Part shown: in pieces, positions 6,320-58,055 of the stretch
Position numbering within the stretch: position 1 is the first letter of the stretch
Layout of the letters: every line of letters begins with the position of its first letter
Sequence record: OR699282.2
DNA: 64,000 bases
Strand: one strand, 5' to 3'
Notes under the pieces: model-generated
What the model saw: the letters and a program-made list of their open reading frames with translations, nothing else
Database searches by the model: none
What the model was told of the DNA's origin: nothing
Translations under genes and position numbers: made by a program

Positions 6320-6511
6320 ATGTTGATTTATCAAAGTGATAATATTCGTGTTATGCAGCATCCCTACTTACAAATCTTTGATGTGCAGCAGTATATGGAA
6401 GGTGATGACCCAAGAACCTATGGTCGTAAGTATGATTACTTCACTGTAAAGCAGTGTAAAAATATTAACGAAGTACGACAATTAGTTCAAGAACTTCAAA
6501 ACAAAGGTTGA
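6320..6511 (+). CDS. hypothetical protein
   Basis: AAGGA RBS before ATG 6320. Confidence 0.7.
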   Translation: MLIYQSDNIRVMQHPYLQIFDVQQYMEGDDPRTYGRKYDYFTVKQCKNINEVRQLVQELQNKG

Positions 6512-6537
6512 CTTCGGTCAGCCTTTTTTGTTATAAT
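6503..6537 (+). terminator. fused intrinsic terminator / sigma70 promoter cassette
   Basis: AGGTTGAC-TTCG-GTCAGCCT-T tract; TTGACT in 5' arm, 18 bp, TGn-TATAAT. Further copies near 9745, 9929, 11273, 12358, 16930, 18213, 19934, 53355, 57392, 60383, 62646. Confidence 0.85.
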
Positions 6538-16849: not shown

Positions 16850-16939
16850 ATGAAGAAGTGTATGATTCTTTGTTCTAATCACCATCGCATGGTACATTCT
16901 GGTAGACTATGTTTGATTGAAAGAAAAAAAAAGGGTTGA
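16850..16939 (+). pseudogene. HNH endonuclease C-terminal remnant
   Basis: MKKCMILCSNHHRMVHSG; stop immediately upstream in frame. Confidence 0.55.
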
Positions 16940-16993
16940 CTTCAGTCGGCCCTTTTTGCTATAATCATTTCATCGAAACGAGAGGATGAATAC

Positions 16994-18208: not shown

Positions 18209-18273
18209 CATAAAGGGTTGACTTCGGTCAGCCCTTTTTGCTATAATCATTTCATCAACTCAAGAGGCAACAC

Positions 18274-19928: not shown

Positions 19929-19996
19929 AACAAAAGGGTTGACTTCGGTCGGCCCTTTTTGCTATAATTATTTCATCAACTGATGAGGATAACGAA

Positions 19997-44340: not shown

Positions 44341-44454
44341 AAACTATTTTAAAAGTATTTGTAGAAAGTACTTGCACCGTACTGATAAAAGCGTATAATG
44401 TTTTACATCGAGAGCGGGAACACTTCCCGCTACACTTTAAAAGAGATGAAAACG

Positions 44455-46345: not shown

Positions 46346-46426
46346 TACTTTTTTTTACTATTCAGTACTGAAAACTATTTTTAAAAAGTACTTGCAAACT
46401 ATGTTTAAAGGCGTATAATGTTTTAC

Positions 46427-46501
46427 ATCAGGACGGGGAACGAAATAAGTAACTTCCCGTTAAGTAGCCCAGGAGTAAGGCACACGAAAAACTCCCCTGA
46501 T
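46427..46501 (+). ncRNA. pseudoknot RNA copy 1
   Basis: own promoter, no ORF, next promoter at 46510; UAAGUA GCC CAGGAGUAA GGC AC ACGAAAA ACUCC. Confidence 0.65.
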
Positions 46502-46569
46502 AAAATAGTTTGACAAATGTTTTTAAAAGCGTATAATACTTACATCAACTACTGAATGAGGGTTACAAA

Positions 46570-47258
46570 ATGAAAACTATCACTACTACTACTTTCGTTA
46601 TGGATTTTTCTGAATTGAACGCAGAACAAAAAACGTCAGCTATCGAACTGGTTCGGGAACGTGAAAAAAACTCAAACGACATTTTTCTGAATTGAACGCA
46701 GAACAAAAAACGTCAGCTATCGAACTGGTTCGGGAACGTGAAAAAAACTCAAACGACAATTATTTTTCTGAAAGTGAAATTGAATACTATAAAGAAACAG
46801 TACTACCGGAATATGGCATTAATGACGCTGAAATACAATTCAGTGGTTTTTGGTCCCAGGGTGACGGTGCATCAATCAGTACTGACCACGTTGACGCAGT
46901 GAAGTTTTTACGCAAGGTAAGAGCATTAACTAAGTATCGCTCAATCCGTCACTTGCTGAATGAAGATGATTTGGCGATGAGTGTAAAGCGTTCGCACTCC
47001 CACTACTCGCATGAGAATACTGTAAGCGGGTACATTGAATCGGCTTACACTGATTTAACCGCAAAACAAGAAACGTTAGTTAATGAGCTTGAGGAACTAC
47101 TCACTGAAACTATTCGTGAATTGTCCCGCAAGTTGTACCGTGATTTAGAGAATGCATATGAGGATCAATTCACTACTGAAAACATTACGGCACTGATTGA
47201 GGGTAACGAGTATCAATTCAATGTTATTGATGGCGTAGTGGAATCAATCGAATATTAA
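46570..47258 (+). pseudogene. early acidic protein disrupted by a 77-bp tandem duplication
   Basis: 46604-46680 equals 46681-46757; removing one copy gives a 203-aa ORF with FSGFWSQGDGAS. Confidence 0.75.
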
Positions 47259-47340
47259 TTTAAAAAGTACTTGTTTAAAGGCGTATAATACTTTATATCG
47301 AGGCGGGGAGTGGTTCCCCGCTCAAACGAGGATTAAAAAA

Positions 47341-47580
47341 ATGGCTAGTACTAAAACTTACAACGGGCACAAAAACAAAACTCATTGGAATGTAAGCCTT
47401 TGGATTAATAACGGTGAGTCATTGTATCGGCTTGCTCAAAGTTGCATCGCACAAAGTAGAACTAAAGATATTGCAGCGGAATGTATGTACCGCAGATTAA
47501 AAGCCAACGGTACTACTACAACGCCGGACGGATTCAAATATAGCACTACTGCGATCCGTGCGGCGATGGTTGGAATGTAA
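47341..47580 (+). CDS. early protein, paralog of 45228
   Basis: GAGGA RBS. Confidence 0.8.
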   Translation: MASTKTYNGHKNKTHWNVSLWINNGESLYRLAQSCIAQSRTKDIAAECMYRRLKANGTTTTPDGFKYSTTAIRAAMVGM

Positions 47581-47637
47581 TATTCAGTACTGAGATAATG
47601 GCGGGTAATAGTTCCCGCCTTTACTGAGGGTTATCTA

Positions 47638-47925
47638 ATGAGTAAAGTAATAAAGTACAATGTGTTAAGCAAATCATTGTCTATCAGTGAATGCACCGAT
47701 GGTTTTTGGATGTACGATGAAACGCGTGGCATGAATTTAGCTATGCGTGCAAAAACTGCTGAGGCGGCGTATATTCAAGCACTGGAATACTACCAGGAAC
47801 GTTTAAAGGAAGTAGAAGAAGATTATAAAAGCCTCAAAGCGAAAGTAGATCATTTCGTCGGTCAATTCGTGGAAGACAACGACGAGGACGGGCACTACTG
47901 CGACCGTTGCGGATCTTACAGTTAA
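47638..47925 (+). CDS. early coiled-coil protein with C-terminal CxxC
   Basis: HYCDRCGSYS. Confidence 0.75.
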   Translation: MSKVIKYNVLSKSLSISECTDGFWMYDETRGMNLAMRAKTAEAAYIQALEYYQERLKEVEEDYKSLKAKVDHFVGQFVEDNDEDGHYCDRCGSYS

Positions 47926-47942
47926 GTACTGAGGATTATCTA

Positions 47943-48146
47943 ATGAGTGATTTAATCGACCGCATCAAAGAGCTTGAAGAAAAAGAATTGCAGTTGATCG
48001 GGTTACGGAATAAAGTATTCCATGATTTAGGTGGCTTTATTAATGCCTGGGATAGTGGCGATCCTGATGCGTTACCTGCTAACCGCCAGGCGATGATCAA
48101 TGATGTGCGTGGTGTCTTTGAGTATGTTTTAAAGCAATTAAATTAA
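47943..48146 (+). CDS. early hypothetical protein
   Basis: GAGGA RBS. Confidence 0.75.
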   Translation: MSDLIDRIKELEEKELQLIGLRNKVFHDLGGFINAWDSGDPDALPANRQAMINDVRGVFEYVLKQLN

Positions 48147-48232
48147 AAAAGTACTTGCAATTAGTTTTCAGTACTGTATAATGGTTTACATCAAAGGGAG
48201 AAATGGTTCTCCCTGGTAATGAGGAAAATAAA

Positions 48233-48454
48233 ATGGCAAATATCACTACTCTTTCCCAACTGGAAGCACTGGTTAAATCTATGCGGGAACATGCCGACAA
48301 AATCGGCGTACAAGATCCAGCCGTTTGCTTCTGCGACGAATTGAATGATGATACCCTGGTAATAGCAGAAGTCCAGGACGTTTCTAACTATTCCTCGCGT
48401 TACACTGGCGGCGTAGCAAATAAAGGTGACTTCTGTTTATACCTTACAAAATAA
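48233..48454 (+). CDS. early hypothetical protein
   Basis: GAGGA RBS. Confidence 0.75.
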   Translation: MANITTLSQLEALVKSMREHADKIGVQDPAVCFCDELNDDTLVIAEVQDVSNYSSRYTGGVANKGDFCLYLTK

Positions 48455-48499
48455 CAACGCGGGGAGATAATAACTCCCCGTTACTTTTTCAGTACTGAA

Positions 48500-48589
48500 T
48501 CATTTAATAGACGGATCTCGGCACCCGGTGGGTTAGTGACTGTTTCGTCTTGATGTAGTAATTATGCCAGTACTGGATGCACTTGTCAA
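48500..48589 (-). ncRNA. double-hairpin element copy F
   Basis: TTGACA-17-CATAAT; GAC-GAAACA-GUC; ACCCACCGGGUGC. Confidence 0.6.
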
Positions 48590-48696
48590 CAACTATTTTT
48601 CAAATACTTTTTATTAAAATACTTGCTAATAGTTTTTAAACGCGTATAATGTTTTGCATAGGGGAGCGGTTCCCCTGGTAACTAAGGAATAAGAAA

Positions 48697-48933
48697 ATGC
48701 TTGAACAAATCAAATCAACGTCTGCTAATGTAACGGGAACGGTATCACACTTTATTGGTGATGAATCGCGGGGCGTTCCCTATTGTGCTGTACATGTAAA
48801 CACTGAGGGTAACTACTGGTTTACGGTTTACGGATCATATTCATTTGGACGGCCAGGGCATCAAAAAATTCTGGATAAAGTACAGCCAACGGGTAAAAAT
48901 ATCACGGCTGAAATGTTTTATAAAAAATCATAA
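48697..48933 (+). CDS. early hypothetical protein
   Basis: AAGGA RBS. Confidence 0.75.
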   Translation: MLEQIKSTSANVTGTVSHFIGDESRGVPYCAVHVNTEGNYWFTVYGSYSFGRPGHQKILDKVQPTGKNITAEMFYKKS

Positions 48934-49017
48934 AGTACTTGATAATAGTTTTTAGTACTGTATAATATTTTACATAGCACGGGGGAGCGGTTCCCCCTGG
49001 TAACTAAGGATAATCAA

Positions 49018-49317
49018 ATGAAAATTGCAATCATCGCCCTGGCTTTATCTGTTTCCTCTTTCGCTGTTAATGCGTCGTTAGATGTGAGTAGTGAAAAATT
49101 CATTCAGTGCACTGTTGCGATGACCAATGAAAGTACGGGCGAGATTGTTTTAAAGGATTTAGAGATCCAGCCACAAGCATTTAAAAACGGGCCGTTCCAT
49201 GAAGAAGACGAAAACGGTAGCACAACCATTTACTATGATGCCAGTACTAAACGCGGTTCGGTCACGGTTATGGATACTGAGAAAGTAACTCATACAGGCG
49301 TTATTAATTGCCGTTGA
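49018..49317 (+). CDS. early exported protein
   Basis: signal peptide ending AVNA. Confidence 0.8.
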   Translation: MKIAIIALALSVSSFAVNASLDVSSEKFIQCTVAMTNESTGEIVLKDLEIQPQAFKNGPFHEEDENGSTTIYYDASTKRGSVTVMDTEKVTHTGVINCR

Positions 49318-49338
49318 TTGATACTACGGGGTAACATC

Positions 49339-49569
49339 ATGACAGCACGAATAGTTTTACTTAACGAAAGCAGTACTACACAACTACTTAACGCCGTGCA
49401 TTATGATATTGAAACGAGCGTTAATCTTATCAGTACTGTCGTACTGTTGGACACTGGAAAGGTCGCCAATGATAAAGCGATTGCAGGTATACTAACGGAT
49501 CTTGAGCCTGGTAGCAGTGCACCAATAACGTTAAATGGTAAAGTGTTTAACATTTTACTTACTGATTAA
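49339..49569 (+). CDS. early hypothetical protein
   Basis: operon context. Confidence 0.65.
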   Translation: MTARIVLLNESSTTQLLNAVHYDIETSVNLISTVVLLDTGKVANDKAIAGILTDLEPGSSAPITLNGKVFNILLTD

Positions 49570-49575
49570 GTACAT

Positions 49576-49597
49576 AGCCCACCTGGTGGGCTTTTTT
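49576..49597 (+). terminator. intrinsic terminator
   Basis: AGCCCACC-T-GGTGGGCT plus T tract; relatives at 50307-50333, 54733-54760. Confidence 0.85.
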
Positions 49598-49686
49598 GTT
49601 TTTGTAGTATCGTAGTACTGAGATACTTTGAAAATAGTTTTAAAAAAGTAGTTGACATTACCGCAGAAAAGCGTAGAATGTATTAC

Positions 49687-49759
49687 ATCAAGACGGGGAG
49701 CACTAAGTAGACCGCCAGTAAGTCGAACGAAAAACTGGACACGTCGAGAAAACTTTGAT
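49687..49759 (+). ncRNA. pseudoknot RNA copy 3 (leader of H-NS-like gene)
   Basis: UAAGUA GAC CGCCAGUAA GUC GA ACGAAAA ACUGG. Confidence 0.6.
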
Positions 49760-49802
49760 ACACTAATAAACGTAAACTAAACTTTAATTGAGGATTTATA
49801 AA

Positions 49803-50285
49803 ATGGCTAATGTAAAATCATTCATCAAAGCACTGGTAGCAAATGAAACTAACGTCGCGGCTGAGATCCTGGCTGAACTGGATAACGATACCATGAAAGC
49901 GGTACGCAATAATTTTAACATCGCGTACAGTACTGCGAAAGAACTACAAGCAAATAAAGCGGCAGAAATTGAAGCGGCAAAGGCGGCCCGTGAAGCAGAA
50001 CTACAAGCAACAATCGAAAGTATTCAGGCGGCAGTAGTTGGATTGGATCTGGAAGTAGTTACAGAGATGGCACAAAAAGCCCTGGCGGTTAAGTATGGGG
50101 AAGACAAGCCAGAAGTAAAAGCCAAAAAATGGATTCAGGAACGCGTAGCGGTAGTACTGGACAACGGGGAAGAATATCTGATTCCGGTGCGTGGTAACTG
50201 TATTGCGGTAGTACTGGACGCGATTAACTCCAGTGGTATGACTCGCGAGGAATGGATCGAAGCTCATCGCAAAGTTGAAGCATAA
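49803..50285 (+). CDS. H-NS/MvaT-like nucleoid protein (distant)
   Basis: Ala/Glu/Lys coiled-coil N-half; C-terminal beta-hairpin then AVVLDAINSSGMTREEWI, echoing the H-NS C-terminus. Confidence 0.45.
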   Translation: MANVKSFIKALVANETNVAAEILAELDNDTMKAVRNNFNIAYSTAKELQANKAAEIEAAKAAREAELQATIESIQAAVVGLDLEVVTEMAQKALAVKYGEDKPEVKAKKWIQERVAVVLDNGEEYLIPVRGNCIAVVLDAINSSGMTREEWIEAHRKVEA

Positions 50286-50570
50286 CAATTAAAGTACTGA
50301 ATCACTAGCCCACCTTAAACGGTGGGCTTTTTTGTGTTTATCGTTTACCAGGCCACCAGCACCGCCTAGAAACGATTCTAACGCATTAAACTGATTATCT
50401 GATGCATTGCCCTAGCTGGTGGCGTTAAGGTCGTTGTAATGCGATTGAGAGCGTTTAAAGTATTTTGCAAAAAGTAATAAAAAGTACTTGCACGATTAAG
50501 AGATTAGCGTATAATGTTTTACATCGAGAGGGGGAAACGGTTCTCCTTCCAAATCAAAGGAATCAAAACA

Positions 50571-50798
50571 ATGGCTATTATCATTACTCGCGTATCTGGT
50601 ACTACTGGCAACGAACAAGTAGTTGCAGTCATTACCAACAAGGAAGGTGCGGAATTGCAAAATGCAATGAATACCTGGGCCGTTAATGAGTTCGGTCAGT
50701 GGGCAAGTGTAGCATACATTGAAACCTATCAAGTGCCGTCGATTAGTTTAACTGATTTGGGCGTTGAGCGTATCCTTTGCCTGGATGAATTAAATTAA
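50571..50798 (+). CDS. early hypothetical protein
   Basis: AAGGA RBS. Confidence 0.75.
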   Translation: MAIIITRVSGTTGNEQVVAVITNKEGAELQNAMNTWAVNEFGQWASVAYIETYQVPSISLTDLGVERILCLDELN

Positions 50799-51118
50799 AA
50801 AAGTACTTGCAAAGTAAATCGAATAAAGTATAATACATTACATCAAGGGGAGAAATGATTCTCCCCACTACAAGGAAACTAATATGAAAACTTGTCAATG
50901 TGGTCAGAAATCTATTACTGGTTTAAAGCGGGGCGTTGCTCTTTGCCAGTACCATTATAATTTACAAGTATGGGGTAAAGAATGGGCCGACCAGGTGGAA
51001 GCAGCAAAGAAAGCAAAAAGTAAGTAAAAATATTATCACAGTACTATTGACATAGTTTGATAGTACTGGCATAATAGATTTTATCAAAACGACACATATT
51101 AATTTAAGGAATACCAAA

Positions 51119-51442
51119 ATGGCTAAAACTATCATCAACACCGTTTCCCTGGCTGCAATCCGTGCAATCAATGTTGACGGTAAACGTTGGACTGATTCAT
51201 ATGGCAATACTTATCATTCTTGTCATGTAAGCGTTGAACTGGATAACGGTTTGAATGATCTGGCGGTTGAATCATTTACTTATGGCTATGAAGATGCATA
51301 TCAACAAACGGCGTTTGATCTCTTAAAGGAATCAGTAGACGGGCTTGATACTGTTGAAACCTCCCTTACTCGTTTATGTAATGATTTGTCTATCCCGTTG
51401 CATTGTACTGTACAGAATGTTAAACGTAAAAAAGATCTTTAA
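51119..51442 (+). CDS. early protein, paralog of 58327
   Basis: RWTDS.GNTYHSC.VS..TYGY..V.RKKD. Confidence 0.8.
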   Translation: MAKTIINTVSLAAIRAINVDGKRWTDSYGNTYHSCHVSVELDNGLNDLAVESFTYGYEDAYQQTAFDLLKESVDGLDTVETSLTRLCNDLSIPLHCTVQNVKRKKDL

Positions 51443-51522
51443 TTAGCTTTACTTTATGCAGATACTTTGATATAGTGTCTGCATAGGGGAAAGAAATTAA
51501 ATTAACTTAAGAGGATAGTATA

Positions 51523-51792
51523 ATGAAAAATATCAGTACTTTAATCGATGCAGGTACACATGTTCGTCGGTCTATGGTTACAACCAGTACTACAAAACAA
51601 GTAGCAAGCGGTTATCTTGTATTTGTGCACGATGGAAAACTCCTGGAACGTTCAATCAATTTTGATGTTAAAAACAATTGCCGTTTTATTATCTTTAAGC
51701 GTGAACAATATAAAATCGATTTACCAGCGAAGCCCATAAGCGGGGCGTACAACGTGCAATCATTGTTTGAGCGTCAACCATACACCTATTAA
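51523..51792 (+). CDS. early hypothetical protein
   Basis: GAGGA RBS. Confidence 0.75.
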   Translation: MKNISTLIDAGTHVRRSMVTTSTTKQVASGYLVFVHDGKLLERSINFDVKNNCRFIIFKREQYKIDLPAKPISGAYNVQSLFERQPYTY

Positions 51793-51843
51793 TCAAAACA
51801 TCGTTAGCGGTCGATTCAGGCCGCTTATATTGGGGATTATACC

Positions 51844-52116
51844 ATGAACGTTAATCAAGTACTGAATGAGATCGAAAGCATCATTAAACCGATGAAGCGT
51901 ACTGATGCTATGTTAACACCGGAAGAATGCCGCCTTTATGAGCGTTACAGCGTCGAACAAGTCCAGGCAATGGCTATGGCTACCCCAGCCGTTAAACCGC
52001 CTGAGAATGCGTTACAGGACGTTACAGGGGATTATATCATTAATCCAGTACTAGGGAAGATGGCTGCAATCACCGAAGATCAACAAGACTACTTAAGCCA
52101 GTACTTAAAAGGTTAA
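51844..52116 (+). CDS. early hypothetical protein
   Basis: GGGGA RBS. Confidence 0.7.
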   Translation: MNVNQVLNEIESIIKPMKRTDAMLTPEECRLYERYSVEQVQAMAMATPAVKPPENALQDVTGDYIINPVLGKMAAITEDQQDYLSQYLKG

Positions 52117-52121
52117 TTAAT

Positions 52122-52331
52122 ATGCTTACTGTACAGGATAAGATCGACATCTTAAAGGTTAATATGTATGTGATTGATGCAGTACCTGGTAAAGTATTTG
52201 CATACGATGACACTACTGTAAGCAATTTCTACTATAGCCAGGACGTGGGGGATCTTTCTGTACAGTCGGTTATTGAAAACGTAGTTAATGCAGCGTATGA
52301 GCATTTACTTTCAAATAGTACTTGCAATTAG
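52122..52331 (+). CDS. early hypothetical protein
   Basis: AAGG RBS. Confidence 0.7.
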   Translation: MLTVQDKIDILKVNMYVIDAVPGKVFAYDDTTVSNFYYSQDVGDLSVQSVIENVVNAAYEHLLSNSTCN

Positions 52332-52629
52332 TTTTTAAACGCGTATAATGTTTTACATGAAGGGGAGAAATGATTCTCCCCACTAATTAAGGAATATGAA
52401 ATGAAAGCATCAAAAAAGAGTAATACTAAGAAAGCACGTTCAACCTTAGATGGGGTATTCCCTTTACGTTTCGTTGATGAAGTAGTTTCCTACCCGCCGG
52501 GCCTTACTCCTGAGATGGTAGAAAGTTTGCGTAAATCTAAAAAATAGTACTTGCAATTAGTTTTTAGTACTGTATAATAGTTTACATGAAGGGGAAAACG
52601 TTCCCCTTACACCTAACGAGGAAAGTATA

Positions 52630-52881
52630 ATGGAAACAATTTTAATCAAAGACACTGCTACTACTGTAACTTATGATAATGATTGCATTATCCCAGGGAC
52701 TGAGTACGGCGAACGTGTACCCGTTCAAGTAGAGATTGATACCACATACATCGACAAGGCTGACCAGTGTATCACTATTGTAATTGGTGAATATCGTTTT
52801 CTACCAGAAGAGATCCAAAAATGGCAGAATATGATTGACCGTGCGAAATTAGTCGCACAAAGTTTAAAATACAAAGTTTAA
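52630..52881 (+). CDS. early hypothetical protein
   Basis: GAGGA RBS. Confidence 0.75.
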   Translation: METILIKDTATTVTYDNDCIIPGTEYGERVPVQVEIDTTYIDKADQCITIVIGEYRFLPEEIQKWQNMIDRAKLVAQSLKYKV

Positions 52882-52967
52882 AATAATACTTGCAATTAGT
52901 TTTTAGTACTGTATAATGTTTTACATGAAGGGGAGAAATGATTCTCCCCAATAACAGGAGAAACAAA

Positions 52968-53120
52968 ATGAAACAATACAACGCTCGGTTTGATGTTACT
53001 ATCGGTAACGGCAAAGGTCAATTCTCTTTCAGTACTCGCCGCAGTTATACAGAAAACTTCCTGCGTAATTGTGCACTGACCGCCGCTCAAATTAAACATT
53101 ATTTTCAGGCTAAAAAATGA
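52968..53120 (+). CDS. early small basic protein
   Basis: AGGAG RBS. Confidence 0.7.
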   Translation: MKQYNARFDVTIGNGKGQFSFSTRRSYTENFLRNCALTAAQIKHYFQAKK

Positions 53121-53359
53121 GATCATTAGCTTATTACAGTTCGGCCCTGGTCGGTGCATTGATCGCGGCGTTGTTAGTAACCTATCTATTCTTTATGGTG
53201 ATTTAAATGAATCCAACAGGTTTAAACTATAAAAGTTGTTCGGCATTTACGAAAGCAAATAAAGCGAATGCACGTAAAGCGAAAGTACAGGAATACATCA
53301 AGCAAGGCATGACGCGAAAGGCGGCGATTCTAAAAGCTAAAAATAAATGAAAAAAGTGG

Positions 53360-53445
53360 TTGACTCCGGTCAGCCATTTTGCTATTATATATTCATTGAG
53401 AGATAGCTCACTAGCCCACAGGGTGCAGGAGTGTATCTATTGTAT
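53360..53445 (+). ncRNA. double-hairpin element copy G
   Basis: cassette promoter; UGAG-AGAUAG-CUCA; GCCCACAGGGUGCA; GUGUAUCUAU. Confidence 0.6.
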
Positions 53446-53571
53446 AATGTTTGAGTACTGAAAACTATTTTAAAGTATTTGATAAAAAGTACTTGCAAAC
53501 TATCTCAATAAGCGTATAATGTTTTACATCGCAAGGGGAAACGGTTTCCCCTAGTAATAAGGAAACGAATC

Positions 53572-53913
53572 ATGACTATCTCAATTGCTCAATCTAACTT
53601 TGAAAATGAAATCATCGCCCAGGCACTGCGTTTAAATGATGGTCGGGCCGAAATCAATTACGGTTTCAATTCAGGCGGTTGTGAAAAATATCAGTACTTT
53701 GTAACGGCTGATGGCGGTGTCCTGGGTATCAATACAGTTATTGTAAACATCCAAAAAATTAATTTCAATGATCCAGACGATAGCCAGTTTTACATCACTG
53801 GCGTAGACGTGAACTATGAGGATGACTCACTAACTGATGATCACACTGGTGAGCGGTTAGAAAGTGCATACGGTGAAGATGATTATCAGTCCGGTCCAGA
53901 AGATTTCGAATAA
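53572..53913 (+). CDS. early very acidic protein (possible DNA mimic)
   Basis: Asp/Glu-rich C-half YEDDSLTDDHTGERLESAYGEDD. Confidence 0.75.
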   Translation: MTISIAQSNFENEIIAQALRLNDGRAEINYGFNSGGCEKYQYFVTADGGVLGINTVIVNIQKINFNDPDDSQFYITGVDVNYEDDSLTDDHTGERLESAYGEDDYQSGPEDFE

Positions 53914-54008
53914 TATAAAAAAATAGTTTGACAATAGATTATAGTACTGTATAATAGTTTACATCAAGGGGAGAATAGTTCTCCCCACTAACAGAGAGAG
54001 AAAACAAA

Positions 54009-54221
54009 ATGGCTAATATCCGGTCGAAATTAAAAAATGCAAAACAAGTTTTATTTTCAGATCATGAATACTTTAATAAAGATATTACAGGAGTTACAAG
54101 TATCAAGGAAGTAAAAGAAAAAACCGGCGTTTTGTGTGATGTGCGATTAGTTGGAACATTTGGGAATAACGTGCTATATCGCTGCGGTGATTACAATTTT
54201 ACACTGACTATCATTAACTAA
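54009..54221 (+). CDS. early hypothetical protein
   Basis: own promoter. Confidence 0.7.
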   Translation: MANIRSKLKNAKQVLFSDHEYFNKDITGVTSIKEVKEKTGVLCDVRLVGTFGNNVLYRCGDYNFTLTIIN

Positions 54222-54840
54222 AAATATTATCACAGTACTATTGACATAGTTTGATAGTACTGACATAATAACTTTTATCAACTACACTACTAAGGAATTA
54301 AAAATGGCTATCATCGCAAAAACTGAAATCATCGGCCTGGATTCTATCATCATGACGTTTGAAGATCAAAAAGGTATGTATGTGGTTTCCTATGGTGATT
54401 ATGTTCGGGAGTATGAAACGGTAGACGAAGCCTTTGAAAGTTACATTCGCCAGGTGAATAAAGCATACGACGACTACCGCTAAAATATATTACCAGTACT
54501 ATTAAATCTATTGACAATGTTTGATAGTACTGTATAATAAGTTTTATCAACAGTAGTTAACTTAACCTAAGAGAGAAACAAAATGATCGCACTGGATTCA
54601 TTCATCGACGCAGTACTGGCAAAAACTGGCGAGGATCTGACCGCAGAACAATACGCAATGATCGAGCAATGCCAGCAAGACGGTAAATCGGTGAAAGATA
54701 CTGTTAAGATTATCCGCAAGATGTAAGATTATAGCCCACTGGTTAACGCTGGTGGGCTTTAATTCATTACCCTATACAATGCCAGTACTAAACCGTTTAT
54801 CTCGTTAGAATGCGTTACAGGACGTTTAACAATGATTAGC

Positions 54841-55029
54841 ATGAAATCAGTACAAAAACAAATAGAAACATTATCAAAAATTAAACGTAAACAGTACTCC
54901 TTAGAATATACAATCAATGGTAACTATCATCTAATGAAAGAAAATAATTTTATAGTCATTGATGAATCATTGCAAATCATTAGTATAGTACTGAAAGCAT
55001 TAATCAATGACAGAAAAAAATTAAAATAA
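54841..55029 (+). CDS. early hypothetical protein
   Basis: ORF track; weak RBS. Confidence 0.5.
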   Translation: MKSVQKQIETLSKIKRKQYSLEYTINGNYHLMKENNFIVIDESLQIISIVLKALINDRKKLK

Positions 55030-55033
55030 ACTA

Positions 55034-55115
55034 TTGACAATATCATCCAGTACTGGCATAATACTTACATCAAGACGAGAACGTCACTAACCCATAGGGT
55101 GCACAAATGTAACTG
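55034..55115 (+). ncRNA. double-hairpin element copy H
   Basis: TTGACA-17-CATAAT; GACG-AGAA-CGUC; ACCCAUAGGGUGCA. Confidence 0.6.
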
Positions 55116-55360
55116 TATAATATTGATCAAAAAATGATCTGATCAATACTTGATCAATTTGCGTAAAGTAGTATAATTCTATGCAGTTGGTTAGACGAAA
55201 GGTTATGATTAGTAGTGCAAGTGTATAAAAATTTTCATGGTGTATCGTTCCGCACATATGGGGATGAATATGTGGTATCATGTGGATTGGAAAAAGTAAG
55301 AACAAGTAATATTATTGTCGCATTACAGTACTATAGTATTTTTATAATGAGGTTAAAATA

Positions 55361-55618
55361 ATGGCTGTAGGATTCGCGAAAGATGGGGCCGAACAAGACG
55401 AGATTAACGCAGTGATTCAGGCTGCCGTTAACCACGCTAGAAAGCAAATTAACGCACAAATAGAATCACTGATACATTGCCTCGACTGCGGCGATATAAT
55501 CCCTGAGAAACGACGCCAGGCCGTTAAGGGATGTAAGTACTGCATAACTTGCCAGGAGGATCATGATAGTACTTTTAAACGTCCCCCGCGTAATTGTTGG
55601 CATAGATCTATGAGATAA
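55361..55618 (+). CDS. TraR/DksA C4-type zinc-finger protein
   Basis: CLDCGDIIPEKRRQAVKGCKYCITCQE; N-terminal acidic DE tip. Confidence 0.9.
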   Translation: MAVGFAKDGAEQDEINAVIQAAVNHARKQINAQIESLIHCLDCGDIIPEKRRQAVKGCKYCITCQEDHDSTFKRPPRNCWHRSMR

Positions 55619-55682
55619 AAAGTAATTGACAGTACTGAAAGATAGTGTATAATGTTTTATATCTTAACTGAGGATAGTAATC

Positions 55683-56039
55683 ATGGGAATACAACATATC
55701 ACGCGTACTACTGACAATGGCGAGATCACTGGCTATCAAGTACAGGGCAAAGTAGCACAATTGCAGTACTGGTTTGTTAAACGTGGAATCATTGCACCGG
55801 ATCTTGATTATGACCGTGTAGCGTTTATTGATTCTCTTTATGTTGATCCTGATAGTCGGGGCAATGGTGAAGGTAACGAATTAATGAATGCCTTTATCGA
55901 TGCCGCCGATGATTCAGATTGTATCATCTTAGAATGCGATACGGGAGAAGATAACGCCTTTAATCTTAAAGAATGGTACGAAGGTTTCGGATTCGAGGTA
56001 TTGATAGATAGTGAATATCCTATCATGATTTTATCATAG
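55683..56039 (+). CDS. GNAT-family acetyltransferase
   Basis: IDSLYVDPDSRGNGEGNELM (acetyl-CoA motif A); WYEGFGF. Confidence 0.85.
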   Translation: MGIQHITRTTDNGEITGYQVQGKVAQLQYWFVKRGIIAPDLDYDRVAFIDSLYVDPDSRGNGEGNELMNAFIDAADDSDCIILECDTGEDNAFNLKEWYEGFGFEVLIDSEYPIMILS

Positions 56040-56117
56040 TACTTGCATTTAGTTTTCAGTACTGTTATAGTACTTGCATCAAGGGGAAACATCTTCCCCT
56101 ACTAAGAGGAAATAAAA

Positions 56118-56306
56118 ATGGAAAACTTATCAAGTATTTTAGTACAAGATGATTTCGGTAATCCTGGAAGTGCTATCATTGTTCGGGGTAATAAAGCAAC
56201 ATTTGTTATTGCTGGTGGACCTGTACAGCGTAGCATTAAAAACAATGCCGTTACTATTAATAATGTACGCTATCGCTTAGATAAAGAATTGATTCATAAA
56301 CTGTAA
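56118..56306 (+). CDS. early hypothetical protein
   Basis: GAGGA RBS. Confidence 0.7.
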   Translation: MENLSSILVQDDFGNPGSAIIVRGNKATFVIAGGPVQRSIKNNAVTINNVRYRLDKELIHKL

Positions 56307-56333
56307 TATTAATTTAATAGAGGATAACAATAA

Positions 56334-56657
56334 ATGTACATTCATACTACTATCACAAAGGAAGTCCGTTGCCAGTTCGAAAGTATTCCGGGCGTATGTT
56401 TCATCACTGGTACGTTTTCCCCTGGTGATCGTGATAATCCAGTACTGTTACAATTACGCCATCCATCATGGGATAAAGCATTTGATCTACCGTTGAATGA
56501 ATTCGCAACTACTGCTGAAAAGTACATTAAAAATATTCGCGAGAATGATCGACTATTCATTAATGCTTTTAGTGATTCCGCGTTAAGCGAGATCCACGGC
56601 GTATTGGTTGCAATCATGGAATCAATGCAGAAAACTAAATTCAAACAAGGTGAATAA
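56334..56657 (+). CDS. early hypothetical protein
   Basis: GAGGA RBS. Confidence 0.75.
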   Translation: MYIHTTITKEVRCQFESIPGVCFITGTFSPGDRDNPVLLQLRHPSWDKAFDLPLNEFATTAEKYIKNIRENDRLFINAFSDSALSEIHGVLVAIMESMQKTKFKQGE

Positions 56658-56740
56658 AAACTATTGACAATGCAATCCAGTACTGTATAATAAGTTACAT
56701 GAAGGGGAGAAATGATTCTCCCCACTGAGAGGAAAGAAAA

Positions 56741-56953
56741 ATGCAAGGTCAACTAATCGTTCGTAAATGGTCTGATACTAACGAAAAACCGTGGGATGTA
56801 CAATACATCGGACCGGATGGGGTATCACGTTATCAGCCTGGCGTAACGCATAGTACTGAGCAATATGCCGCCGCTCACCGCGAACGCCTGTTAGAATCCA
56901 TGAAACAGGGATACGGTGAAAAATTCATTCAAGATCATTGGCTGAAAGATTAA
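56741..56953 (+). CDS. early hypothetical protein
   Basis: GAGGA RBS. Confidence 0.75.
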   Translation: MQGQLIVRKWSDTNEKPWDVQYIGPDGVSRYQPGVTHSTEQYAAAHRERLLESMKQGYGEKFIQDHWLKD

Positions 56954-57397
56954 TAGAAGGAGTACAGCTTATGCAAATGAATCCGATGATTATTGTTTTA
57001 GCTGTACTTATGATCATTCATGCAATTGTAGAAGTATTAACGCAATCAGGAGTAATAAAATGATTCAAGTAGAATTATCAGTACTGAAAGATCTGTTTTA
57101 TCGGTTAGGTACTACTGGAGAGTATCCTAAAAGTGATACCGCAAAACTTTTTGTATCACTCGACTTATGGCAACGCGAACAATTAGTAATGTCCTGGCGT
57201 AAAGGTAAAGCAGATAGCGAGGTGAAAGCATGAAAGAATTCTTATTCGAAGTAGTGTTTCAAGGTGTCGGTAGTAACCAACTGATTCGCTCAAGTGGTTA
57301 CAATGTTAACCAGGCATGGAATAACATTAAACAAATGTACCCGAACGCTATCACCTATCGCAACCCGAAAGAAGTTTAAAAATAATTGAAAAAGGGA

Positions 57398-57475
57398 TTG
57401 ACTCCGGTCAGTCCCTTTGCTATTATATACGCATAGAAACAAATCAGCCCACAGGGTGCATAAATGTATCTATTG
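57398..57475 (+). ncRNA. double-hairpin element copy I
   Basis: cassette promoter; GCCCACAGGGUGCA..UGUAUCUAU. Confidence 0.55.
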
Positions 57476-57551
57476 TTAGCTGGTGGCTAGTACTGAAAAC
57501 TATTTTTAAAAAGTACTTGCATTGTACTTAGAATCAAGTATAATGTTTTAC

Positions 57552-57624
57552 ATCAGGACGGGGAACGAAACAAGTAACCCCGTTAAGTAGTCCAGGAGTA
57601 AGACATACGAAAACCTCCCCTGAT
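57552..57624 (+). ncRNA. pseudoknot RNA copy 2
   Basis: own promoter, no ORF; UAAGUA GUC CAGGAGUAA GAC AU ACGAAAA CCUCC. Confidence 0.65.
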
Positions 57625-57693
57625 AAAAAAGATTGACAATAGTTTGAAGTACTGATAAAATAATCACATCAACTACTGATAAGGAAACATAAA

Positions 57694-57969
57694 ATGCGGA
57701 TTCTACTGACAGCTAACGAAATCGAACAAGTACTGACTACTAACCTGGAAGACTGGAAACGTGAAGCAGATATCCAGGCGGTTCAATGGCTTAACGATAA
57801 GTTAACGCCGGATGACTTAAGCAAGATTGTAGATCCTCAATTCTACGAAGATATTCACGACACCGCGTTAAGCGTCGAGGATGTACTAGATAAGCACTAC
57901 ATTGATACTGATTTGCAGGTTTACGGTCGTAAAAACTTTATCACTATTCACGATATTTACAATAATTAA
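57694..57969 (+). CDS. early acidic protein
   Basis: AAGGA RBS; Asp/Glu-rich. Confidence 0.75.
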   Translation: MRILLTANEIEQVLTTNLEDWKREADIQAVQWLNDKLTPDDLSKIVDPQFYEDIHDTALSVEDVLDKHYIDTDLQVYGRKNFITIHDIYNN

Positions 57970-58055
57970 GTATTGACAAAGTATCTTAGTACTGTATAAT
58001 AGTTTACATCGAGAGGGGGAATGGTTCCCCTCCTAACTAAAAGAGAGAAATAAAA

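Follow-up and report, generated by a model that had tools for sequence, protein, structure and literature searches.

Three copies of an RNA module in the early region of a jumbo phage

We analysed a 64,000-nucleotide stretch of sequence record OR699282.2 (hereafter the window; one strand, 5′ to 3′), which comes from a Rak2-like (121Q/PBECO4/G17 group) Escherichia coli jumbo phage, and within it a family of short RNA elements that an earlier note, made from the letters alone, had placed directly behind strong promoters. The three elements stand where that note put them (copy 1, 46427–46501; copy 2, 49687–49759; copy 3, 57552–57624; all on the + strand). An exact pattern of three linkers at fixed spacing (UAAGUA, AGUAA and ACGAAAA) occurs at 46461–46490, 49704–49733 and 57584–57613 on the + strand and at no other site in the window, the chance expectation being 0.34 matches even at three mismatches. 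A covariance model of the wider family described below was run on the window and scored copies 1, 2 and 3 at 51.0, 51.8 and 50.0 bits; because the next match falls to 10.0 bits, the window holds exactly three copies. Each copy begins 7–8 nt past the −10 element of a strong sigma-70 promoter.

Copy 1 follows a strong sigma-70 early promoter with an A/T-rich upstream region (TTGCAA-16-TATAAT, 46392–46419, +) and comprises a closing stem (46427–46432 with 46496–46501), a hairpin termed P0 (46433–46460), stem 1 (46467–46469 with 46479–46481) and stem 2, the helix that the loop of stem 1 forms with an arm further downstream (46472–46476 with 46491–46495). Copy 2, behind the strong promoter TTGACA-16-TAGAAT (49652–49679, +), is without P0 and has two closing stems (49687–49691 with 49755–49759 and 49692–49695 with 49742–49745), followed by stem 1 (49710–49712 with 49722–49724) and stem 2 (49715–49719 with 49734–49738). 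Copy 3, behind the strong promoter TTGCAT-16-TATAAT (57517–57544, +), again has a closing stem (57552–57557 with 57619–57624), P0 (57558–57583), stem 1 (57590–57592 with 57602–57604) and stem 2 (57595–57598 with 57615–57618). In coordinate order, stem 1 reads GCC/GGC, GAC/GUC and GUC/GAC and stem 2 reads GGAGU/ACUCC, CCAGU/ACUGG and GGAG/CUCC; with the end pairings AUCAGG/CCUGAU and AUCAA/UUGAU, all of the stems, loop-arm pairings and terminal pairings that had been quoted can be read in the sequence.

The surroundings of the copies were partly misassigned in the earlier note, which had copies 1 and 2 run into a new promoter and copy 3 into a gene. By coordinate, it is the first and third copies that lead into a promoter and the second (49687) that leads into a gene. 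A consensus promoter (TTGACA-16-TATAAT, 46510–46537, +) starts 14 nt past the 3′ arm of the copy 1 pseudoknot and drives the gene at 46570–47258, and a promoter starting 14 nt past the copy 3 pseudoknot (TTGACA-17-TAAAAT, 57633–57661, +) drives the gene at 57694–57969. These two module sites (46392 then 46510; 57517 then 57633) are the only places in the window with closely spaced tandem promoters. The copy 2 unit is a single gene (49803–50285, +) bracketed by terminator-like sites, namely an intrinsic-terminator-like hairpin with a T-run just upstream of the unit (49576–49592, +) and a similar site at its 3′ end (50307–50328, +); between copy 2 and the gene lies a weak and uncertain promoter-like site (TTGATA-17-TAAACT, 49755–49783, +).

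Covariation supports an H-type pseudoknot

The core of the module is an H-type pseudoknot of roughly 38 nt, in which a 3-bp stem 1 (G-N-C with G-N′-C) and a 5–6-bp stem 2 are joined by three nearly invariant unpaired blocks (UAAGUA(G), UAAG and ACGAAAA). We aligned 32 distinct cores over 40 columns, with the three pairs of stem 1 and six pairs of stem 2 treated as a pseudoknot. The earlier note had set homologues that break the pairing against its own proposal; across the 32 cores, standard pairs fill 94.8% of cells, compared with 23–41% when the 3′ partners are slid by one to three columns. Fifteen of the 40 columns are invariant, a figure to be read with the family having been gathered partly by exact linker patterns, which leaves the stems unbiased and perhaps overstates the invariance of the linkers.

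Double-sided changes were found in five of the nine pairs, namely the middle pair of stem 1 and four pairs of stem 2. The middle pair of stem 1 has the form AU in 24 cores, CG in four, UA in three and GC in one, and no core leaves it unpaired. Its CG state occurs in the Rak2/Justusliebigvirus copies and in a separate short viral contig (L094), the UA state in the jumbo phage and a Kayfunavirus-like contig, and the GC state in a T3-like contig. The pair states in stem 2 are CG/GC, CG/GC/UA, UA/AU/UG and GC/GU/AU. Compensatory change, which had been claimed for both helices, therefore holds for stem 2 and for the middle of stem 1, but does not extend to the outer G-C and C-G pairs of stem 1, which are invariant in all 32 distinct cores. 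The core also contains 12 G-U wobbles that would be C-A mismatches if the opposite strand were read, and the structure thus belongs to the transcript strand.

Support also came from 28 T7-like leaders, in which RNAalifold independently recovered both P0 and stem 2. Double changes affected seven pairs in these leaders, against 3.9 ± 0.8 in shuffled alignments, and the pairs of P0 itself covary (CG/GC/UG, GC/AU/GU/CG and GC/CG). As a negative control, we used 137 distinct linker-matching sequences from viral (IMG/VR) and metagenomic collections, where matches to the loose pattern arise mostly by chance. Both stems were fully paired in 33 of the 137; these were all 32 members of the phage-leader family and one of the remaining 105 sequences. 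A covariance model of the core separated members (46–68 bits) from noise (13 bits or less).

Eight metagenomic contigs (L153, L160, L163, L164, L173, L174, L175 and L181) carry an unrelated conserved element that matches the linkers by chance; GTAA repeats stand in front of it and neither stem can be formed.

The third loop of the pseudoknot is A-rich and 9 nt long. An extra pairing of the 5′ block with this loop showed no covariation, one side being invariant, and the loop length together with the invariant outer pairs of stem 1 would fit minor-groove contacts to stem 1. The H-type pseudoknot with fixed linkers that had been proposed from three copies is thus much more strongly supported once its relatives are added, and the element is almost certainly a conserved structured RNA module that lies, on the transcribed strand, at the extreme 5′ end of transcripts from strong early promoters of the host polymerase.

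The module is shared by unrelated lytic phages of Enterobacterales

Searches by blastn with the window copies returned matches in all close relatives, in Justusliebigvirus phages of about 145 kb (muut, outra and others), in the Vequintavirinae phage LTH01, in Munch-like Salmonella and Klebsiella jumbo phages, in the Erwinia jumbo phage Hallingskeid and, unexpectedly, in T7-like Yersinia phages. In T7 itself, the module lies at about nt 536–587, within the leader of the A1 promoter (+1 at 498), and ends one base before the −35 element of A2, giving the same promoter-module-promoter layout as window copies 1 and 3. A 54-nt T7 segment was matched in 487 phage records, once in each, including T3, K1F, phiYeO3-12 and T7-like phages of Klebsiella, Salmonella, Citrobacter, Enterobacter, Serratia, Pectobacterium and Kosakonia; further examples with the module come from Drulisvirus, Cronosvirus and Limelightvirus. 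The description of a three-copy family was therefore too small, since T7 and about 500 other phages have the motif. The unpaired blocks are invariant in phages of Escherichia, Klebsiella, Yersinia, Salmonella, Erwinia, Pantoea and Cronobacter. Within a genome, few promoters carry the module: one of the three early promoters in T7, and three of the roughly 40 early promoters at 43–64 kb of the window.

Host sequences gave a different picture. Among 185,579 species genomes scanned with the exact pattern, the only match was a contig of a metagenome-assembled genome that carries a T7-like leader, and blastn found no motif in 5,426 complete E. coli genomes (prophages included) or in 72,556 plasmids. 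The module is limited to lytic phages of Enterobacterales, and it is mobile between unrelated groups of them, given that it is common to these groups and that the jumbo phage and Justusliebigvirus muut share a gene beside it at 99% identity.

Module placement and leader architecture

The start of the core lies between +19 and +54 of a strong promoter in every lineage examined. The next promoter, whose transcripts are without the module, follows 2–49 nt past the 3′ arm in 15–16 of 17 lineage representatives. The exception is L094 (module region L094:4112–4190, +), which has no promoter behind the module and instead carries a boxA-like sequence 19 nt past it, identical to the one downstream of A3 in T7. 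No terminator was found after the module.

The leaders differ in what surrounds the core. T7-like leaders have a separate 5′ hairpin, then P0 and then the pseudoknot, whereas window copies 1 and 3, Justusliebigvirus and the Munch-like phages have P0 and a closing stem in which the first bases of the transcript pair with those just past the pseudoknot, and copy 2, LTH01 and Hallingskeid have the closing stem without P0. Among the non-T7 lineages, the closing stems differ in sequence and keep their pairing, from which we conclude that outside the T7 group the module is a closed domain beginning at the transcription start. As far as layout goes, this agrees with the suggestion in the earlier note that the RNA is a product in its own right, given its fixed place at the transcription start, the terminal stem that closes it and the second promoter behind it.

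For the T7 group, release of the leader can be tied to a known processing site. In T7, RNase III cuts the leader from the mRNA at R0.3, and an R0.3 RNase III site is annotated in phiYeO3-12; a discrete leader RNA therefore exists in T7-group phages. Two T7 laboratory isolates bear on whether the module is needed. In T7_del_holin F10 and F20 (MZ318362 and MZ318363; L198 and L199; host BL21; complete genomes), a deletion starts inside the motif; lost with it are the A-run and the 3′ strand native to stem 2, as well as A2, A3 and the greater part of genes 0.3–0.7, and at most three stem 2 pairs can be re-formed at the new junction. Since both isolates are without the native 3′ strand of stem 2, an intact pseudoknot is probably not needed for growth on a laboratory strain, and the module would be accessory rather than essential, like other accessory functions of early infection.

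Genes next to the module

The genes downstream of the module vary between lineages. T7 has ocr there, phiYeO3-12 has a SAM (S-adenosylmethionine)-dependent methyltransferase by the annotation of its gene 0.3, and the large phages have various proteins of unknown function. Those behind the three window copies fall into PHROGs that have no known function. Copy 2 leads into a gene for a protein of 160 aa (PHROG 27871) whose N-terminal half is helical and Ala/Glu-rich. It had been described as H-NS-like, a likeness for which we found no support in Pfam, PDB sequences or PHROGs. Homologues of this gene stand directly behind the module in Munch-like and Hallingskeid jumbo phages (L139:3783–4370 and L138:12172–12798; E-values of 4e-15 and 7e-8). 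The protein encoded by the gene after copy 3 (57694–57969, +) is 99% identical to muut_139 of Justusliebigvirus muut (L141:6152–6427). The homologous copy-2-type neighbours in three jumbo lineages and the 99% identical gene after copy 3 point to the transfer of entire cassettes; for copy 3, the identity indicates that a module-promoter-gene cassette passed recently between unrelated phage groups.

A role as leader of one common downstream gene, which would make that gene a general cis target, was considered and rejected: the downstream genes differ, and homologous neighbours were found only for the copy-2-type module in the three jumbo lineages.

The gene after copy 1 (46570–47258, +) is represented by two open reading frames of the same PHROG (5162), apparently a single gene broken by a perfect frame-shifting tandem duplication, which may be real or an assembly artefact.

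Comparison with known RNA families

No RNA family had been recognised from the letters, and scans with Rfam 15 (4227 models) agree. None of the models matched the whole window at its gathering score, no match covered the motif core at 44–60 kb with E-values up to 10, and the left ends of T7, phiA1122, GAP227 and phiYeO3-12 gave no match at all at E-values up to 10. We rate the module as a new RNA family. Several of the functions suggested for it in the earlier note can be set against these data. A sponge for CsrA/RsmA, which would have several GGA motifs exposed in hairpin loops, is not supported: the GGA triplet occurs only in the Rak2/Justusliebigvirus variant and is there paired inside stem 2, and it is replaced by CCUG, CCAG or CUUG in copy 2 and in the variants of T7-like phages, Munch-like phages and LTH01. 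For an exonuclease-resistant RNA, no Rfam model of that kind matched at 44–60 kb with E-values up to 10, and enterobacteria are not known to have a 5′–3′ exoribonuclease.

Among described systems, the putL and putR elements of phage HK022, antiterminator RNAs that act in cis and are compared here by architecture and position, are similarly phage-encoded, about 70 nt long, structured, located just downstream of early host-polymerase promoters and independent of phage proteins. They differ in forming two stem-loops rather than one hairpin and an H-type pseudoknot, in standing between a promoter and an operon rather than before a further promoter, and in belonging to temperate lambdoid phages, whereas the module is absent from the 5,426 E. 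coli genomes with their prophages. The boxA/nut signals of lambda, rrn operons and the T7 early leader are likewise short conserved leader signals for conserved host factors, and share a leader with the module in T7 and L094, but boxA is linear and lies downstream of all early promoters, whereas the pseudoknot lies upstream of A2 and A3. The mRNA leader of T4 gene 32 likewise has an H-type pseudoknot at its 5′ end, to which a protein binds; it is tied to a single autoregulated gene, whereas the module has no constant downstream gene.

Two further comparisons concern the fold. The preQ1-I aptamer, the smallest of the H-type pseudoknot riboswitches, resembles the module in its very small size, in a third loop rich in A and in the high conservation of its unpaired bases, but the stem lengths are inverted in the module (3-bp stem 1, 5–6-bp stem 2), no Rfam match was obtained, and the module has neither an expression platform nor queuosine genes nearby. 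Type III antitoxin RNAs such as ToxI are also short pseudoknotted units, arranged as tandem direct repeats of a 34–45-nt unit, and the pseudo-ToxI of phage TE is a precedent for a phage-encoded decoy. The module, in contrast, is not tandem, has no sequence or model similarity to these RNAs, and has no host counterpart that we could find.

A possible trans-acting RNA

Our tentative first choice is that the pseudoknot acts in trans as a high-affinity ligand, either decoy or aptamer, for a conserved component of the enterobacterial cell. The promoter and module would together form a small, horizontally mobile RNA gene, whose RNA would be produced abundantly during the first minutes of infection, at first as the 5′ part of a longer transcript, and would then be released, or be stable, as a discrete RNA. 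The folded pseudoknot may bind a putative conserved host component in trans, and the downstream genes, which keep a promoter of their own, would not depend on the module. We prefer such an independent RNA product to a general cis-acting leader signal because few promoters carry the module, because it is placed upstream of the next promoter, because it forms a closed domain and because its own promoter travels with it. A conserved host partner or small ligand is suggested by unpaired bases that are invariant in phages sharing almost no proteins. The decoy role proposed in the earlier note is plausible in this setting.

Several points weigh against this account. There is no terminator behind the module, so that a discrete stable RNA in the jumbo phage would have to be assumed. 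The near-universal promoter just downstream could mean that the RNA acts on transcription through that promoter. Anti-defence decoys are usually patchy, whereas the element looks near-universal in enterobacterial T7-like phages, which argues for a core host factor and keeps cis-acting models alive. The copy-2-type module, which precedes homologous genes in three jumbo lineages, could be a cis-regulatory leader for that gene family.

Alternative explanations

A cis-acting nascent RNA is a doubtful but serious contender, nearly as likely as the reading in trans. The pseudoknot would bind the transcribing host RNA polymerase on leaving its exit channel, causing either put-like resistance to pausing and termination, or release of sigma-70 such that polymerase crosses the next promoter without stalling at its −10 and −35 elements. 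The constant promoter-proximal position on the transcribed strand without a terminator fits this reading, as do invariant unpaired bases suited to recognition of a conserved machine such as RNA polymerase. The 3′ arm ends 2–49 nt before the next promoter in 15–16 of 17 lineages, so folding would be complete as polymerase enters that promoter, and boxA-like sequences follow the module, 19 nt past it in L094 and further downstream in T7. A general modifier of polymerase would, however, be expected downstream of all tandem promoters, as the T7 boxA-like sequence is; with the module upstream, most early polymerases would be without it. Moreover, just three of the window's early promoters, about 40 in number, carry the module, the copy 2 unit is one gene between terminators, a cis-acting signal does not require terminal stems that pair the 5′ end, and the hairpin and H-type pseudoknot differ from the two stem-loops of put.

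It is improbable that the module is a small-molecule aptamer, that is, a riboswitch-like sensor of, or sponge for, a metabolite or signalling nucleotide held in a pocket of invariant unpaired bases, as in preQ1-I. The compact H-type pseudoknot with its A-rich third loop, the 15 invariant columns of 40 and the freely covarying helices form a pattern that is typical of aptamers. Yet no expression platform is apparent, there being no terminator and no sequestration of a ribosome-binding site common to the lineages (the next element in T7 is a promoter), the association with genes is inconsistent, and no Rfam riboswitch model matched at E-values up to 10.

Somewhat less credible still is generic protection of early transcripts at the 5′ end against RNase E and pyrophosphohydrolase, as by the ordinary 5′ hairpins of other leaders. 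Simple G-rich 5′ hairpins stand behind about 30 other early promoters of the window and the module, too, pairs the first transcribed bases; any stable hairpin would suffice for this purpose, which leaves unexplained the pseudoknot, the invariant unpaired blocks in unrelated phage families and the placement before a second promoter whose transcripts are without the module.

Mimicry of a type III antitoxin, by which the RNA would inhibit a ToxN-family endoribonuclease in the manner of pseudo-ToxI, was the leading specific idea of the earlier note and is very unlikely, even with early synthesis from strong promoters, a pseudoknotted core of about 38 nt that falls within the antitoxin range, and an A-run in the third loop like the A-rich cleavage contexts of such toxins. 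The units are single, 3.2 and 7.9 kb apart in the window with no tandem array at any copy and one copy per T7-like genome; Rfam gave nothing related at E-values up to 10 and no toxin partner was seen. No similar sequence was found in the 5,426 E. coli genomes, 72,556 plasmids and 185,579 species genomes, where an antitoxin being mimicked would be expected, and near-universality in T7-like phages is odd for a response to a rare plasmid-borne system. We give as little credence to a new small self-cleaving ribozyme, or a processing signal, that would detach the leader from the mRNA. Small size, a pseudoknot, many invariant unpaired bases and a unit-like module without a terminator all suit a ribozyme, and small ribozymes are common in phages, but there was no match to the Rfam twister, pistol, hatchet, hammerhead or hepatitis delta virus models and, although natural T7 A1 templates have served in vitro transcription for decades, self-cleavage of the leader is not known to have been reported. 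An element acting as DNA (an operator, UP element or protein-binding palindrome before the second promoter) can practically be dismissed, for although in several lineages its position relative to the next promoter would be about −40 to −80, with an A-run at the position of a would-be UP element in T7, its spacing to that promoter ranges from 2 to 49 nt, its arms covary, its 12 G-U wobbles are tolerated only on the + strand, and L094 has no downstream promoter.

Novelty and implications

Few viruses have been studied as closely as T7, whose A1 promoter serves transcription biochemistry as a standard tool. The pseudoknot that covariation supports in the A1 leader nevertheless appears to have gone undescribed, despite being kept in 487 T7-like records and shared with at least five other phage groups. 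Keyword and T7-sequence searches of the literature returned no published description of the module, with the qualification that older T7 literature could mention a conserved segment. Papers containing the T7 segment print it only as an A1 transcription template or as a target for CRISPR interference. The main text of a screen of >10,000 unnamed phage RNA candidates names neither T7 nor the motif (PMC10690425).

The fixed unpaired bases, together with the restriction to lytic enterobacterial phages, imply that a specific and conserved partner in the host acts during the first minutes of infection, and identifying it would add an RNA-based layer to the takeover of the host by phages and may explain the tandem early promoters. 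Most likely the mechanism is of a known kind (decoy, nascent-RNA regulator or aptamer). A bolder possibility, which we consider rather unlikely, is that RNA, not protein, would be the first and most abundant product of infection, a mobile gene whose RNA binds a core host machine or alarm signal by an unprecedented mechanism, for example by stripping sigma-70 from polymerases, recruiting polymerase to the adjacent promoters or soaking up an immune signalling molecule. If this were true, the module would represent a new class of anti-host RNA and give a function to the long-puzzling A1-A2-A3 tandem arrangement of T7. On the practical side, A1 templates with and without the module segment may behave differently in vitro.

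Other features of the window

A scan for tRNA and tmRNA genes found none, and boxA-like sequences in the early region of the jumbo phage were limited to chance-level matches in the window. Between 44372 and 63262 (+), about 30 early promoters of the window have, from about +5 onward, a short G-rich 5′ hairpin of the GGGGA...UCCCC type (for example 44405–44440, 50521–50550 and 58006–58035), a leader design distinct from the pseudoknot module and presumably a 5′ stabiliser. A repeated hairpin with a 12-bp stem holds a TTGACT −35 element inside its 5′ arm and is followed by a TATTAT or TATAAT −10 element (53353–53380, 57391–57418, 60382–60409 and 62645–62672, +), with similar hairpin-promoter sites at 6508–6537, 16936–16965, 18218–18247 and 19939–19968. 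These sites appear to combine a terminator with a promoter and possibly represent a second promoter class.

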